Below, piece by piece: positions 354 through 9,400 of a stretch of 64,000 bases of DNA. The stretch is from Macrostomum hystrix (Eukaryota; Animalia; Platyhelminthes), in the NCBI GenBank assembly GCA_950097015.1, contig CATNEN010000020.1:1-64000 (forward strand). The letters run 5' to 3'. Within the stretch, counting starts at the first letter, position 1, and each line of letters opens with the position of its first letter. The notes beneath the pieces were generated by a model. That model saw only the letters and a list, made by a program, of their open reading frames with translations, was not told where the DNA came from and ran no database searches. The position numbers and the translations under genes are program-made.

Positions 354-3300
354 ATGTTTCCCTTACTCACAATACTCACCGCTGTCCTCCTGTACCTCAT
401 GAACTCACTTCATTCCTCACACCACCGAGAAGACGCACAAGAACTCACCGACCAGGACCTCCTCGCAGCCATCAGAGACGACCGAGTGGAGCCCGTTCAG
501 CGATTCATTAACAGCGGCGGCAGCCTCGATACCTTCATCGCCTATGCTGACTCATTTTTTACTCCAGCAATGCTCGCTTGCCGTTTCGGAAGACATGAAA
601 TTCTCGTGAGACTCATCCGAGCCATTGCAGATGTAGATAAGCAGAACTGGAGAGGGGCGACAGCATTGTGGATGGCATCACAATATGGTCACCACCGACT
701 GGTGAAATCACTCATCAAAGCACGAGCCGACGTCAATCTTCAAACAAATAATGGCGCCTCACCTCTCCACATTGCATCACTAAATGGCCATAACGACGTC
801 GTCCACTCACTCATCAAAGCACGAGCCGACGTCAATCTTCAAACAATTACTGGCGCCTCACCTCTCTACATTGCATCATATCAAGGCCATAACGACGTCG
901 TCCACTCACTCATCAATGCACGAGCCGACGTCAATCTTCAAGAAAATACTGGCTACTCACCTCTCCACATTGCATCACAAAATGGCCATAACGACGTCGT
1001 CCACTCACTCATCAAAGCACGAGCCGACGTCAATCTTCAAATAAATACTGGCGCCTCACCTCTCTACATTGCATCACAGCAAGGCCATAACGACGTCGTC
1101 CACTCACTCATCAATGCACGAGCCGACGTCAATCTTCAAAAAAATACTGGCGACTCACCTCTCCACATTGCATCACTAAATGGCCATAACGACGTCGTCC
1201 ACTCACTCATCAAAGCACGAGCCGACGTCAATCTTCAAACAATTACTGGCGCCTCACCTCTCTACATTGCATCATATCAAGGCCATAACGACGTCGTCCA
1301 CTCACTCATCAAAGCACGAGCCGACGTCAATCTTCAAACAAATACTGGCGAGTCACCTCTCTACATTGCATCACTAAATGGCCATAACGACGTCGTCCAC
1401 TCACTCATCAAAGCACGAGCCGACGTCAATCTTCAACAGAAAGTCTATGGCGCCTCACCTCTCTACATTGCATCCCGCAATGGCCATAACGACGTCGTCC
1501 ACTCACTCATCAAAGCACGAGCCGACGTCAATCTTCAAACAAATAATGGCGCCTCACCTCTCTACATTGCATCACAGCAAGGCCATAACGACGTCGTCCA
1601 CTCACTCATCAAAGCACGAGCCGACGTCAATCTTCAAGATAATACTGGCGCCTCACCTCTCTACATTGCATCACAAAATGGCCACCTCAGTGTTGTCGAG
1701 TCACTCATGAAGGTCGTTCATAGCCCCGACTTGCTGACAGCTGCTCTGCGAATCGCCACGGAAATCGGCCATGACCAAGTGGTTGACCTGCTGAGCCGTG
1801 GATCCTCCGCGCCATTGCCTGAGGAGAAGCAAAACAGGTAGGAGCTCCTGTTTCTTGTAAATGTCACCTGAACAATCATAGATACTTCGGATTCTCTGAG
1901 TATTCAGACTCCAAATCTGATTGCTGAACTTCGGAACTGATTGTTTTTGTGTTATTGTGTTATTGTTTTCTTGTTTTATTGTTATTGTTAAGGTTCTCAC
2001 GAATACCTGCTGCTTTTACTTCGCATTGTTAAGAGCTGGCGAATTTATAGCCAAAAGCCTCGAATTCACAGCAATGACCACTAGGAGTAAAATAACGGAA
2101 AACTACGATAATAGTTAATAAATATGTCTGCTTGCGCCGAAGATTATACCACAAGGATAGGAAATTGTTAGTGGCGCTGGTGTGCCGCCGGCCCTAGTTA
2201 GCAGTGGCGCCCTCAGAAGGCGAAAGACAGAACTTCCTAGTAGTTCTTATTGTCAATGCCTGTTTAGCCACAGACAGCAGACTCCACTTCAAAATTCTCA
2301 GTTTATGATTCGGATTTGATTGTGGAGGATTCAATATTACAGGCTTGGGATTCAATATTACAGGTTTGAGATTCAGTATTACAGGTTTGAGATTCAGTAT
2401 TACAGGTTTGAGATTCAATATTACAGGTTTGAGATTTAATATTACAGGTTTGGGATTTAATATTACAGGTTTGGAATTCAATATTACAGGTTTGGGATTC
2501 AATATTACAGGTTTGGGGTTCAGTATTACAGGCTCGGGATTTAATATTACAGGTTTGGGGTTCAGTATTACAGGTTTGGGATTCAATATTACAGGTTTGA
2601 GATTCAATATTACAGGTTTGGGGTTCAGTATTACAGGCTCGGGATTTAATATTACAGGTTTGGGGTTCAGTATTACAGGTTTGGGATTCAATATTACAGG
2701 TTTGGGATTAAATGTTACAGGTTCGGGATTCAATATTACAGGCTCGGGATTTAATATTACAGGTTTGGGGTTCAGTATTACAGGTTTGGAATTCAATATT
2801 ACAGGTTTGGGATTAAATGTTACAGGTTTGAGATTCAATGTTACAGAAATATTGGATTTAGATTTCTTAAAATTGACACATTCTGGCTGTTTAGTGTATT
2901 ATTCGCAAAAAATCTGCCTACTAATCTTTTAAAATTCATATATTTTTCTCATTCCTCGTTTCAGCTGTAGTTTTAGTTTCAATCCCAGTGAAACTCAGCA
3001 CTGCCGCCTCCTCTCACCCTTCAGAGCCTCCCAGCCTCACTGAAACTCAGCACTGCCGCCTCCTCTCACCCTTCAGAGCCTCCCAGACTCACTGAACCTC
3101 AGCACTGCCGCCTCCTCTCACCCTTCAGAGCCTCCCAGCCTCACTGAACCTCAGCACTGCCGCCTCCTCTCACCCTTCAGAGCCGCTCCCAGCGACGCAG
3201 AGCTGAGCCAGCAGCTGCACTCCAAGCTCTCTCAGTCGGGATTCGTGGACTCCAGAGCCGCCTTGCAGATCGCTGTGGCTGACGTCTTGCAGGATGTCCT

Positions 3301-6300
3301 CAGGAAGAGATGGAACAATGACGACTGGTTCGCTGTGGGCAGCTTCTCTGAGGCCTGGGGCAACAGCCTGGTCTCTCTGGATGGCAGAACTGACATCGAC
3401 TCTGACATCGATGTTATTGAGCTGATTCCAGGAAGGCCGATTCACCCGAGAGATGTGTGCGAGTGCGACCGAGTGGAGGCTGCTCAGACAGTGGAGCTCA
3501 GCAATGGCCACATCCTGAGCTCCGGATTCGGTGAGAATTTCCTGTCAGAGACTGTCGGGATGGCTGGGACAAGAATTGAACATGAGTTTGGCTTGCTCAT
3601 CTTCTTTGGCTTTCTAAAGCAAACAACAAACAAGGAAAGCAAACAAATGTTCAGTCCAGGTTTGAAATGCAGAGCCAGAGCAAGAAATTTCCCAGCAAAA
3701 ATGTAAACCCTGATTTTTCTTTCGGCACGCTTCCTCTGGGAACCAAACAGAGGCTTAGCGCTCCTCGCTCAGTGTACTTAGTGAATAGTGATGCTATATT
3801 ATGTATTCATGGTACATACTGATCTTTATAAGCCAAAATCTAATATCCTATATTCGCTATAAACTGTTAGTTAACTAGCAATGTAATCCCATCTTCGGGA
3901 GCCCAGACGATTCAATCAAGTTTCTCTCTGTTTCTCAGGCTCGCAATACTTTCACAGTCACAGGTGTGTAAAAGTAAAGTTTTTGAGGTGACCGCCCCAG
4001 TCCATGGACTGAACCGTTGTACACAGCTTTTGGAAGCGTCGTACAAACGCTACGGCTGGGCCATTGCAAATTTCGGTTATTTCTATTATATTATATTCTG
4101 TTGCCGCTTTTACAGAATTAGTTTTCTGTGATTCTGAAATTATGCCAATCAATGTCCATTGATTTTCAACAATATTCCGAACAGCCAATTCTAACTAGCC
4201 ATATAGTAGCTAGTTATCCAGTAGACAGGAAAATTATCCTAATTTATGTGGGCGGGAAAACCACCGCCGCAGGAAAATCCCATCGAATTTCCAGTCCAGA
4301 TTTGAATCTCGGCCTGAGGGAACGATGCTTGTCCAAGAGCTGGAATCATAACCTCGTATTTATTCAGCTCAGCCAGCTGAAGGTTACAGTAGAAATTTGA
4401 GGGGGCTGGTGACTCCCCAGTACAAAGACTGAAGAGCTGTATACAGTACTCACAAAATACTCATTAGAAACTAAAGAAGCAAGGAAGAATTGAAAATAAT
4501 CGTGCACGTGCTGCCCTCCGTAGGGGGCAAAAGTTTCTAGTCTGCACTAAAATTTCATATAAATCGCAGCTACAAACCATCTTTGCACAATTTTTTTATC
4601 TTATCGAGAAATAGTTCTGTGTCTATTAACTTGAAATCGGATGGCATTTTGCATATTTCTTGCATTTCCTTTTACTCCAGCCTCCAACCCAGCCTACACT
4701 CAAAATGGCTCCGCCATGAGACCGGCTGTGGATTACGTCACCGCCCGCCGCCTCTGCCGCTACCCTCCCATCGCGCCGCTGCAACCACCAAGAGTCTCCA
4801 ACTCCAACATCCTCCAGTCCGTGCTGCAGTCGCTCGAGCGAGACCTCACCGCTGCCTCATCGCCCTGTCACGTGGTGCACGCAGCCCCTCCTGGAATGGG
4901 CGGCCAGCAGCTCCGAGTGAGCAGCAGCTTCCTGGAGAGGCGACTGCTGCAGAGTCTCAGCACTCTGCAAGGCCAGCTGTTCGTCACACTCAAGTGGCTG
5001 CTGAAGAAGAAAATCTCAAACGTCGGCTTCAAGTCCTATCACGCAAAGACCGTCACGTTCCGAATGCTGGAGGAGACACCTGCTGAGCAGTGGAAGCCGG
5101 AGAATCTCGTGAGACTCACGACACGCTCGCTGCAGATTTTGCTTGACGGTGTGGAGAGCGGCTGCAGATCAGACACACCTGACGGTCGGATCCTGGAGCA
5201 CTTCTTCCTGAGCGATGCCGCTGTGTACCTGAAGGGCTTGAAGTCGCCCACATCAGCTGAGAGAGTGAGCGAAGCGTTGAATCGGGCAGCCGGCGCATTG
5301 AGTGACGCCATGGCTGAGCTGCCTCAGCTGCTGCTGCAGTTCGAGGACAGTCTGCGACCCGTCACCGACTCGGGCCGATTCCACTTCCACCCGTTCCTCA
5401 TCCTGCCAGTTCTTTGGCTCACACCTGTACCAGAAGCCAAGACATGCGAGTTCCACGAGATCTACGACATCGTGAGAGAGTCGGTGCTTCGTCTGTCCGA
5501 TGGAGACCGCAGCCCGCAGTCCCGAGAGAGTCTCGCAGAGCTGATCAACAAACTGCCAGACTGCGCCCGATCAGCGCGAGAGTCTCTCAGAGCGCTGGCC
5601 TGCCTGAAGTTCGGCGACAGACGCACTGCTGAAAAAGTTGTGAGCGACTGCGGGCCGTTCAGTGCGAGCAGAGGCATCGATTGGGGAGATGAGAGGTCGG
5701 CGAGAGAGGCCACTGCGGACTTTGTGTGGCAGCACCTGAAGAGCCGAGACTCCGCCTGGAAATTCTGCTTGGAGTTTGATGAGCGACCGAAGCTGCCGAT
5801 TCAGCACAAAGTCTTTGCCGACTGCTTTCCGCTGCAGATGATAAACTACAGCACATACTTCTACCTGAACTTTGACGCTCTGCTGCGGGCTCTTTGCAAT
5901 GAGCTGACAGTAGCAGGAGACCGGAGCGATCAGGACTGGATCCGGGATGTGGCTCAGAGGGAGGATGCGGATGAGCAGGAGCTGCTGGTGGCTGCGGCGA
6001 TCTGCGGAGATCTGGAGCTGCTGCGGCGGCTGCGCAGAAGAATCACTCACGAGCTGTGCCAGCTGCCAGGGTGGCTGCAGCAGAAGATTGAGAGGCTGAG
6101 CAGTCAAGGTGAAGATCGCCAAGACCAAGGTGAAGATCGCCAAGACCAAGGTGAAGATCGCCAAGACCAAGGTGAAGATCGCCAAGACCAAGGTGAACAT
6201 CGCCAAGACCAAGGTGAAGATCGCCAAAACCAAGAGATTCAAGAGAGATTGATATTGAGATTGAGATCAGCACAGGCAAAAAGGCTGCAGAGAAAGCGAA

Positions 6301-6314
6301 AATCGGTCGAGTAA
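354..6314 (+). CDS. Ankyrin-repeat + Mab-21/cGAS-like nucleotidyltransferase (cGLR) fusion protein, 3 exons, about 1155 aa
   Basis: Exons 354-1837 (AG|GTAGGA, phase 2), 3181-3530 (pyrimidine tract+CAG acceptor; G|GTGAGA, phase 1) and 4681-6314 (TTTACTCCAG acceptor) join in frame: 3468 nt = 1156 codons. An in-frame TAG at 276 supports ATG 354. Exon 1 has about 14 ANK repeats. Exon 2 has VGSFSE...SDIDV (GS and DxD motifs). Exon 3 has AVDYV (candidate third acidic residue), [20 protein letters not shown] and ILEHFFL, typical of the Mab-21 C-lobe. Confidence 0.85.
753..1690 (+). repeat. Coding tandem array of near-identical 99-bp ankyrin units (one of 102 bp)
   Basis: Units start GGC at 753, 852, 951, 1050, 1149, 1248, 1347, 1449, 1548 and 1647; consensus [33 protein letters not shown]. 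Confidence 0.95.
2331..2845. repeat. 21-bp minisatellite (CAATATTACAGGTTTGGGATT) in intron 1
   Basis: About 24 copies; explains the spurious GFNITGL / NPKPVIL ORFs. Confidence 0.95.
2989..3184 (+). repeat. 52-bp tandem repeat x4 duplicating the exon-2 splice acceptor
   Basis: TGAA starts at 2989, 3041, 3093 and 3145; each unit contains CCTCCTCTCACCCTTCAG|AGCC. Confidence 0.9.
3988..4040 (+). repeat. Short dispersed repeat (GGTGACCCCCAGTCCATGGACTGAACAGCTG...TTTGGAAG); other copies at about 4407-4447, 25654-25785 and 26904-27100
   Basis: Four similar copies, all on +. The 26.9-kb copy has an internal duplication of about 37 bp. Confidence 0.65.
6105..6230 (+). repeat. Coding 21-bp repeat x6 (QGEDRQD) in the cGLR C-terminal tail
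   Basis: CAAGGTGAAGATCGCCAAGAC tandem, in frame. Confidence 0.9.
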
Positions 6315-6454
6315 AGCACCAAATATAATCATTTTACAATCAAGTTATCATTTAGTATCAAAAGATCATTGGACCATCAAGTCGTACACTCACGAGCTGT
6401 GCCGGCTGCCAGGGTGGCTGCAGCAGAAGATTCGGAGGCTGAGATGTCAAACTA

Positions 6455-9400
6455 AAACTTCAGGCCTGTGACAATCGAACATCAGGCCAGTGACTGTCGA
6501 ACTTCAGGCTCGTGCTTTGCGAGTGAGTCGTACCTCCTCAGGCCAGTGACTATCGAACATCAGGCAAGTGACTATCGAACTTCAGGCCAGTGACTATCGA
6601 ACTTCAGGCCAGTGACTATCGAACTTCAGGCCAGTGACTATTGAACTGAAGGCCAGTGACTATCAAACTTCAGGCCAGTGACCATCGAACTTCAGGCCAG
6701 TGACTATCGAACATCAGGCAAGTGACTATCGAACTTCAGGCCAGTGACTATCGAACTTCAGGCCAGTGACTATCGAACTTCAGGCCAGTGACTGTCGAAC
6801 TTCAGGCCAGTGACCATCGAACTTTAGGCAAATGCTTTATGAGTGAGTTCTACCTCCTCAGGCCAGTGACTGTCGTACTTCAGGCTCGTGCTTTGTGAGT
6901 GAGTCCGACCTCCTCAGGCCAGTGACAATCGAACTTCAGGCTAGTGACTATAAAACTTCAGGCCAGTGACCATCGAACTTCAGGCCAGTGACTATTGAAC
7001 TTCAGGCCAGTGACTATCAAACTTCAGGCTCGTGCTTGGTGAGTGAGTTCTACCTCCTCAGGCCAGTGACTGTCGTACTTCAGGCCAGTGACCATCAAAC
7101 TTCAGGTCAGTTACTATCCAACTTCAGGCTCGTGCTTTGTGAGTGAGTCCTACCTCCTCAGGCCAGTGACAATCGAACTTGAGGCTAGTGACTATCGAAC
7201 TTCAGGCCAGTGACTATCGAACTTCAGGCCAGTGACCATCAAACTTCAGGCCAGTGACTATCGAACTTCAGGCCAGTGACCATCAAACTTCAGGCCAGTG
7301 ACTATTGAACTGAAGGCCAGTGACAATCAAACTTCAGGCCAGTGACCATCGAACTTCAGGCCAGTGACTATCGAACTTCAGGCCAGTGACTTTCGAACTT
7401 CAGGCCAGTGACCATCAAACTTCAGGCCAGTGACCATCGAACTTTAGGCACATGCTTTATGAGTGAGTCCGACCTCCTCAGGCCAGTGACAATCGAACTT
7501 CAGGCTAGTGACTATCAAACTTCAGGCCAGTGACCATCGAACTTCAGGCTAGTGACTATCAAACTTCAGGCCAGTGACTATTGAACTTCAGGCCAGTGAC
7601 CATCAAACTTCAGGTCAGTTACTATCCAACTTCAGGCTCGTGCTTTGTGAGTGAGTCCTACCTCCTCAGGCCAGTGACAATCGAACTTGAGGCTAGTGAC
7701 TATCGAACTTCAGGCCAGTGACTATCGAACTTCAGGCCAGTGACCATCAAACTTCAGGCCAGTGACTATCGAACTTCAGGCCAGTGACTATTGAACTGAA
7801 GGCCAGTGACTATCAAACTTCAGGCCAGTGACCATCGAACTTCAGGCCAGTGACTATCGAACTTCAGGCCAGTGACTTTCGAACTTCAGGCCAGTGACCA
7901 TCAAACTTCAGGCCAGTGACCATCGAACTTTAGGCACATGCTTTATGAGTGAGTCCGACCTCCTCAGGCCAGTGACAATCGAACTTCAGGCTAGTGACTA
8001 TCAAACTTCAGGCCAGTGACCATCGAACTTCAGGCTAGTGACTATCAAACTTCAGGCCAGTGACTATTGAACTTCAGGCCAGTGACCATCAAACTTCAGG
8101 TCAGTTACTATCCAACTTCAGGCTCGTGCTTTGTGAGTGAGTCCTACCTCCTCAGGCCAGTGACAATCGAACTTGAGGCTAGTGACTATCGAACTTCAGG
8201 CCAGTGACTATCGAACTTCAGGCCAGTGACCATCAAACTTCAGGCCAGTGACTATCGAACTTCAGGCCAGTGACCATCAAACTTCAGGCCAGTGACTATT
8301 GAACTGAAGACCAGTGACTATCAAACTTCAGGCCAGTGACCATCGAACTTCAGGCCAGTGACTATCGAACTTCAGGCAAGTGACTATCGAACTTCAGGCC
8401 AGTGACTATCGAACTTCAGGCTCGTGCTTTTGAGTGAGTCGCACCTCCTCAGGCCAGTGACCATCGAACTTCAGGCTCGTGCTTTTGAGTGAGTCGCACC
8501 TCCTCAGGCCAGTGACCTTCGAACTTCAGGCCAGTGACTATCGAACTTCAGGCCAGTGACTATCGAACTTCAGGCCAGTGACTATCGAACTTCAGGCCAG
8601 TGACCATCGAACTTTAGGCACATGCTTTATGAGTGAGTCCGACCTCCTCAGGCCAGTGACAATCGAACTTCAGGCTAGTGACTATCAAACTTCAGGCCAG
8701 TGACCATCGAACTTCAGGCTAGTGACTATTGAACTTCAGGCCAGTGACTATTGAACTTCAGGTCAGTTACTATTGAACTTCAGGCCAGTGACCATCAAAC
8801 TTCAGGTCAGTTACTATCCAACTTCAGGCTCGTGCTTTGTGAGTGAGTCCTACCTCCTCAGGCCAGTGACAATCGAACTTGAGGCTAGTGACTATCGAAC
8901 TTCAGGCCAGTGACTATCGAACTTCAGGCCAGTGACTATCGAACTTCAGGCCAGTGACCATCAAACTTCAGGCCAGTGACTATCGAACTTCAGGCCAGTG
9001 ACCATCAAACTTCAGGCCAGTGACTATTGAACTGAAGGCCAGTGACTATCAAACTTCAGGCCAGTGACCATCGAACTTCAGGCCAGTGACTATCGAACTT
9101 CAGGCAAGTGACTATCGAACTTCAGGCCAGTGACTATCGAACTTCAGCCTCGTGCTTTTGAGTGAGTCGCACCTCCTCAGGCCAGTGACCATCGAACTTC
9201 AGGCTCGTGCTTTTGAGTGAGTCGCACCTCCTCAGGCCAGTGACCTTCGAACTTCAGGCCAGTGACTATCGAACTTCAGGCCAGTGACTATCGAACTTCA
9301 GGCCAGTGACTATCGAACTTCAGGCCAGTGACTATCAAACTTCAGGCCAGTGACTATCGAACTTCAGGCCAGTGACTATCGAACTTCAGGCAAGTGACTA

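Follow-up and report, generated by a model that had tools for sequence, protein, structure and literature searches.

The first 64,000 nucleotides of contig CATNEN010000020.1 of Macrostomum hystrix (GenBank assembly GCA_950097015.1), hereafter the window, contain near their beginning an intact, transcribed three-exon gene that belongs to an expanded Macrostomum family of ankyrin-fused cGAS-like receptors (cGLRs). The region is eukaryotic, and its plus strand carries three long open reading frames (ORFs) at 354–1841, 3245–3706, and 4641–6314. An earlier note, made from the letters of the sequence, had proposed that three such fragments join in frame through canonical splice sites into a protein of about 1155 aa, and the analysis bore this out: positions 354–1837, 3181–3530, and 4681–6314 form a coding sequence (CDS) of 3468 nt, in which all 1155 codons are open and which closes with a single terminal stop. 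Both introns are of the GT–AG type, with the donors CAG/GTAGGA at 1837/1838 and TCG/GTGAGA at 3530/3531 (the slash marks the splice boundary) and the acceptors ...CCCTTCAG/A at 3180/3181 and ...TACTCCAG/C at 4680/4681.

Exon 1 (354–1837; this and all features below lie on the plus strand) comprises codons 1–494 and two further nucleotides, and encodes a putative hydrophobic N-terminus and an array of ankyrin (ANK) repeats. It is delimited by the ORF, the donor CAG/GT, RNA depth from ~540 onward, and collinearity, from residue 25, with P0031, a 1094-aa relative from Macrostomum lignano. Intron 1 (1838–3180) has an RNA depth of ~0 and is skipped by a contig of RNA run X7. Exon 2 (3181–3530) encodes residues 495–611, the N-terminal half of a nucleotidyltransferase (NTase) core, and is covered by RNA contigs over 3178–3530 and by a gapless alignment of paralogues. 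In intron 2 (3531–4680), the RNA depth is ~0 except for one block near 3940–4139. Exon 3 (4681–6314) encodes residues 612–1155 and the stop, and thus the remainder of the NTase core, the Mab-21_C helical lobe, a C-terminal domain, and a tail.

Evidence for transcription came from two runs of one organism, X9 and X7, which behaved here like RNA libraries and whose assembler contigs were compared with the window. Their depth reached tens to hundreds on the exons and was ~0 over 1940–3139 and most of 3540–4539. An RNA check across 1837/3181 and 3530/4681 had been suggested in the earlier note, and contigs bridging both junctions were found. At the first junction, an X7 contig passes from 1823 to 3178 with AAGCAAAA between; it reads ...GAG AAGCAAAA CAG/AGCC..., which is the 1837/3181 junction of the window minus one GAG codon, and X9 has an equivalent loose end. 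At the second, TGAGCTCCGGATTC, the end of exon 2, stands immediately before 4681 in an X9 contig. The bridging contigs are ~97% identical to the window; because of this difference of ~3%, they probably represent an allele or a near copy. Only the 3' part of exon 3 (5945–6339) had contigs free of differences. In X9 and X7, no contig depth was found over 340–539, and RNA depth begins at ~540; therefore, the start codon ATG 354 and the hydrophobic N-terminus are putative. Runs X1 and X3 (organism A) were left out as transcription evidence because intron sequence was also present in them (a contig on 3556–3777). Independently of RNA, three M. lignano proteins, P0031 (UniRef A0A1I8HFI3), P0032 (PAA51373.1), and P0041, aligned gaplessly over both exon junctions. 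Separately, 4–12% of the sampled exon-3 words were present in wastewater, outdoor, and sediment metatranscriptomes (runs X2, X4, X5, X12, and X13).

Intron 1 holds a 21-nt minisatellite (2327–2846) and a 52-nt tandem repeat (2989–3193, 3.9 copies), which reaches the exon-2 acceptor and duplicates it, so that an acceptor-like 'cacccttcag/agcc' occurs in every copy. Only the acceptor of the last copy preserves the frame, because 52 is not a multiple of 3. The low RNA depth over 2940–3139 may reflect minor use of the upstream acceptor copies, or paralogues.

The cGAS-like receptor domain

The NTase domain, which the earlier note had placed in the Mab-21 family, was scanned against Pfam in the two pieces over which it is split. 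The exon-3 piece matched Mab-21_C (PF20266) at 18.0 bits (E 0.0032) against a cut-off of 24.1, neither piece matched Mab-21 (PF03281), and exon 2 gave a faint match to the MTPAP palm at chance level (E 0.19). Because Pfam remained below threshold on the pieces of the window, the cGLR assignment rests on a family profile and on structure; by these two routes the placement was upheld.

A word-indexed search with the exon-3 product retrieved 30 relatives, nearly all of them from M. lignano and many named ANK_REP_REGION or Mab-21 domain-containing. A profile, A1, was built from 17 of these relatives and run exhaustively against 1.84 billion representatives at 50% identity. It returned 845 proteins at E ≤ 1e-3, 86 of which had E ≤ 1e-30. 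Mab-21_C matched 15 of the 17 profile paralogues (best E 1.4e-7), and A1, which consists of paralogues only, matched cGAS chains in the PDB with E 1.8e-5. In the distant tier of A1 matches (E 1e-11 to 1e-15, over profile positions ~100–330), the proteins pass both Pfam models, PF03281 and PF20266; the organism-named members of this tier were from the clam Mercenaria, a bivalve.

In an alignment of 60 sequences that included bivalve Mab-21 proteins, the reference columns G62, S63, S83, D84, D86, and D143 were nearly invariant. The G62/S63 column pair corresponds to the activation-loop motif G548-S549 of the window protein (3338–3343). The first two catalytic acids, D570-I-D572 in SDIDV (3404–3412), fall in the S83/D84/D86 columns, where Pfam-positive Mab-21 proteins have their SDxD. 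The third, D629 in RPAVDYV (4731–4733), falls in the D143 column, which the HMMER alignment pairs with the Asp in the 'ISVDIILAL' stretch of mouse cGAS. The apparently intact GS, DxD, and candidate third Asp (AVDYV) picked out beforehand were thus recovered as conserved positions of the family.

The strict cGLR motif of Li et al. (2023; PMC9980059) is h[QT]GS X8-20 [DE]h[DE]h X50-90 h[DE]h. The window protein reads V547-G548-S549, X20, D570-I-D572-V, X54, V628-D629-Y630. It carries in full the relaxed motif applied here, a G[S/G] loop followed by [ED]h[ED] X50-90 [ED], and its spacings of 20 and 54 lie within X8-20 and X50-90. The A1 profile and the column alignment with the bivalve proteins showed homology to cGLRs in the NTase core and in the C-terminal helix bundle alike.

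An AlphaFold2 model of residues 485–1094 of P0031, which is 64% identical to the window protein (aligned over residues 25–1082), was taken as a structural proxy and mapped to the window by alignment. This model of 610 residues had a pLDDT (predicted local distance difference test score) of 93.2 and a pTM (predicted template modelling score) of 0.93. All 50 of the 50 best Foldseek matches in the PDB were cGAS or Cv-cGLR1. The superposition on cGAS proposed in the earlier note was obtained with VIA-align: model residues 18–341 matched residues 161–521 of human cGAS (6ct9) with a Z score of 19.6 and a root-mean-square deviation of 3.5 Å over 266 residues, and Z was 19.3 to MB21D2 and 19.0 to Cv-cGLR1. 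The Foldseek and VIA-align matches indicate that the whole bilobed cGAS fold is present at residues ~504–836 (3206–5354, split by intron 2), and predicted structural homology to cGAS/CD-NTases was thus found by proxy of the P0031 model.

The whole catalytic fold is common to this family, human and mouse cGAS, human MB21D2, and oyster Cv-cGLR1 (Z 19–19.6 over ~265–285 residues), and the GS loop and acidic triad stand at equivalent positions. However, sequence identity to these proteins is only 14–20%, the cGLR core of the window protein is acidic, with an isoelectric point (pI) of 6.1, and the solved catalytic domains lack both the ANK array of this protein and its additional C-terminal domain of 250 aa. 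The identity of the domain as OAS or a non-canonical poly(A) or terminal uridylyltransferase (TUT) polymerase was considered and rejected: the fold matches were cGAS, cGLR, or MB21D2, and MTPAP appeared only at E 0.19.

Ankyrin array and N-terminal segment

The ANK array occupies 450–1814 and consists of tandem 33-residue repeats that score above the Pfam threshold (Ank_2, E 7e-119 and 389 bits; Ank, 274 bits in 12 stretches). The previously estimated number of about 14 repeats agrees with the 13–14 units, including caps, that were counted by eye, whereas Pfam delimits the 12 stretches. Tandem Repeats Finder detected in the array a homogenised core repeat of 99 nt, or 33 codons (708–1684; 9.8 copies, 90% match). 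Among eight core units, variation is restricted to unit positions 7, 8, 9, 11, 15, 19, 20, and 31; codons elsewhere are mostly identical, and the codon table contains nearly no synonymous differences. The variable unit positions are the canonical ANK positions 1, 2, 3, 5, 9, 13, 14, and 25.

Designed ankyrin binders have six randomised positions, including 2, 3, 5, 13, and 14. Five of these six are found among the eight variable positions of the window array, a coincidence with a probability of ~0.001 by our own hypergeometric arithmetic. When 71 ANK units of the window protein and of the five relatives closest to it were taken together, entropy was highest at positions 1, 2, 3, and 5. Judged from the sequence, this pattern of variation has the look of a diversifying binding surface; it fits ANK-mediated sensing and is no proof of it.

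Upstream of the array lies a candidate hydrophobic N-terminal segment (354–410), a possible signal anchor. The hydrophobic character reported earlier for the N-terminus was reproduced (Kyte-Doolittle mean 1.85 over 19 residues), while its start is putative, 354–539 being the part without RNA support; these first 19 residues are possibly hydrophobic enough for a membrane segment. Similar hydrophobic N-termini occur in the relatives P0043, P0056, and P0079 and not in every paralogue. The 5' flank begins with a polypyrimidine tract of 200 nt, (TCTCT)n, at 1–206, which ends in ...TTCAG ~150 nt 5' of ATG 354 and could act as an acceptor region for splicing or trans-splicing. The interval from this tract to ATG 354 contains two short upstream ORFs, with their ATG at ~220 and ~237.

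C-terminal domain and Macrostomum relatives

The cGLR fold is followed by a family-specific alpha/beta domain of ~250 aa (5352–6101), modelled from the window's own sequence with a pLDDT of 88.6, which is conserved family-wide. A profile of this domain had no match among PDB or Pfam sequences, and Foldseek found no matching fold in the PDB (best E 0.42). In AFDB, it matched flatworm relatives and then, weakly, the tails that follow Mab-21 in oyster, mussel, and scallop proteins.

The last 70 residues of the protein consist of a low-complexity (QGEDRQD)x6 repeat and a basic tail. The repeat is encoded by a 21-nt tandem repeat of 6.2 copies (6105–6234). Near-copy RNA contigs depart from the window at 6128–6197, inside this repeat, where they read TAA/TAT and reach a stop soon after, which indicates that the length of the tail is polymorphic among near copies. 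Just 3' of the stop, part of the CDS end (residues 1067–1089; protein identity 74%) is copied at 6388–6456, and a satellite array with a 22-nt unit then occupies 6456–7935. The remaining large ORFs of the window, at 21–64 kb, gave no informative Pfam match, and no second ANK–cGLR copy was found in the window.

All members of the family that bear an organism name are from M. lignano. P0031, P0032, and P0041 are arranged like the window protein, with an ANK array at the N-terminus followed by the cGLR domain and the same C-terminal domain, and share with it the signature GSxSEGWGNSL...SDIDV...RPAVD; full-length identity is 58–65%, with no gaps at the exon junctions. They differ from it in the number of ANK units, and the (QGEDRQD)x6 tail is the window's. 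Since the window protein is only ~65% identical to these relatives, it is another paralogue or comes from another Macrostomum species. The cGLR domain of this family is usually accompanied by ANK repeats: a narrow hidden Markov model (HMM) detected them in at least 41 of the 112 retrieved relatives; Pfam detected them in all eight further relatives tested, most of which the narrow HMM had missed. Another arrangement was observed in the M. lignano proteins P0087 (1099 aa) and P0195 (1444 aa), in which the cGLR-like domain is followed by ANK repeats and then by a C-terminal caspase domain (Peptidase_C14, E 2e-25). These would be fusions of a sensor enzyme and a protease within one chain.

A possible sensor enzyme and its alternatives

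Animal cGLRs were defined by Li et al. (2023; PMC9980059), who catalogued ~3,000 of them; 87% are single-domain proteins, and some have tetratricopeptide repeat (TPR) or ankyrin modules. ANK–cGLR fusions, in which the NTase domain is joined to ankyrin repeats as in the window protein, are listed there as a recognised architecture (Fig. 1C/S2A, Table S2), which answers the question, left aside in the earlier note, of whether the architecture had been described. Three cGLRs of S. pistillata also carry extra fused domains, including ANK repeats and death domains, and the listed part of the domain table contains accessions with the prefix PAA, which marks M. lignano proteins, with Ank_2 matches. 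None of the listed table rows contained an accession of the relatives nearest to the window protein. The screening table (Table S3) has five M. lignano entries; the two whose rows are in the listed part, constructs #89 and #90, show the motif of the window family (GSFAEAWGNSL...D.D.DV and GSFGDGWG...SDIDF). Our literature search found no paper linking Macrostomum with cGLR, cGAS function, or STING.

The reading that we prefer, with a probability of roughly 0.6, is that the protein is a cytosolic innate-immune sensor enzyme in which binding of a non-nucleic-acid ligand by the ANK array triggers production of a nucleotide second messenger. The N-terminus might tether the enzyme to a membrane. 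The ligand, most probably a protein, would dock on the concave face of the ANK array, where the contact positions vary among the repeats; the NTase would thereby be released or activated, and would make a nucleotide second messenger to be read by a receptor. The cGLRs that sense double-stranded DNA (dsDNA) or double-stranded RNA (dsRNA) have a pI >8.5, and non-nucleic-acid ligands have been suggested for acidic cGLRs (Li et al., 2023; PMC9980059). The acidic core of the window protein is weak evidence in this respect, because among the paralogues the core pI spans 6.1 to 9.25.

This range of pI is one of several points that weigh against the preferred reading. The structure model was made from a 64%-identical relative, P0031, instead of the window protein itself. 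GS is preceded by V instead of Q/T, the one position at which the strict cGLR motif fails. The third Asp is lost in some paralogues, for example in P0018, so that some of the family may lack catalytic activity. The hypervariability of the repeats could also be explained by relaxed constraint at surface positions together with gene conversion. No family member has a known enzymatic product, ligand, or receptor; in the listed part of Table S3, the 'Note' of constructs #89 and #90 is empty, which leaves them outside the 15 enzymes selected for activity with dsDNA or poly I:C, and that publication reports no activity, ligand, or product for the flatworm enzymes (Li et al., 2023; PMC9980059).

A more far-reaching version of the sensor reading, which we hold only tentatively, is that the family forms a flatworm-specific, fast-diversifying repertoire of protein-sensing immune receptors. 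Homogenised ANK arrays with hypervariable contact residues would confer specificity, much as designed ankyrin repeat proteins (DARPins) do, and an acidic cGLR core with a previously undescribed C-terminal domain would turn binding into a nucleotide signal, possibly at a membrane. If this were true, the repertoire would correspond in function to NOD-like receptors (NLRs) but with cGLR output, and would be the first class of cGLRs whose defined ligand is a protein and not a nucleic acid. In fungi, receptors of the NLR/STAND (signal transduction ATPases with numerous domains) type have hypervariable, internally homogenised ANK, TPR, or WD repeats with differences at ligand-contact positions, and have undergone large lineage-specific expansion. 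The window family similarly has near-identical tandem repeats that vary at contact positions and a lineage-specific expansion; unlike these receptors, its output module is an NTase and not an oligomerising ATPase. Pfam found no NACHT or NB-ARC domain in the three exon products. The NLR-like sensor logic suggested in the earlier note therefore stands as an analogy, and membership in the NLR/STAND class does not.

It is rather unlikely, although the best of the competing explanations, that the enzyme is active and the ANK array is not its sensor. The array would then serve localisation, oligomerisation, autoinhibition, or effector recruitment, and recognition of the activating ligand would fall to the back face of the cGLR domain or to the C-terminal domain, similar to the situation in single-domain cGLRs. 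Sensing of the ligand on the NTase back face is common to all characterised cGLRs (PMC9980059). This explanation is also favoured by the family-wide conservation of the 250-aa C-terminal domain, which was part of the 610-residue model with a pTM of 0.93, and by the position of the ANK repeats between the cGLR and caspase domains in P0087 and P0195, which looks like an adaptor role. However, the repeats of the window array differ mainly on the canonical ANK binding surface and have near-identical scaffold codons, which would not be expected from localisation or scaffolding alone.

We consider it improbable that the cGLR domain is not a second-messenger synthase at all, being instead a structural or regulatory module like Mab21L1 or catalysing some other nucleotidyl transfer. 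Besides the V before GS and the two M. lignano constructs, which in the listed part of the screening table were not chosen as active, this explanation can draw on the 'GS..GWGNSL..SDIDV' loop, eight residues longer between GS and DxD than in the bivalve relatives, and on the faint MTPAP palm match of exon 2. Nevertheless, dozens of divergent paralogues retain the GS, the Asp pair of DxD, and the third Asp almost without exception, which argues for selection on catalysis, and the fold matches cGAS and cGLRs rather than poly(A) or TUT polymerases.

An annotation artefact, either a pseudogene or separate neighbouring ANK and cGLR genes, is very improbable and was rejected: although the junction-spanning contigs come from ~97%-identical copies and not demonstrably from this exact locus, and the 5' end is without RNA support, the CDS is open throughout, depth is confined to the exons, both junctions are bridged, and many full-length relatives are collinear with identical architecture.

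In conclusion, both the architecture and the family have already been catalogued, and the locus adds one more member with a checked gene model and no new principle. Most animal cGLRs are orphans, and dsDNA and dsRNA are the sole known activators. The dozens of ANK–cGLR paralogues of Macrostomum, with their binding-surface differences, are well suited to a search for a cGLR ligand other than nucleic acid.

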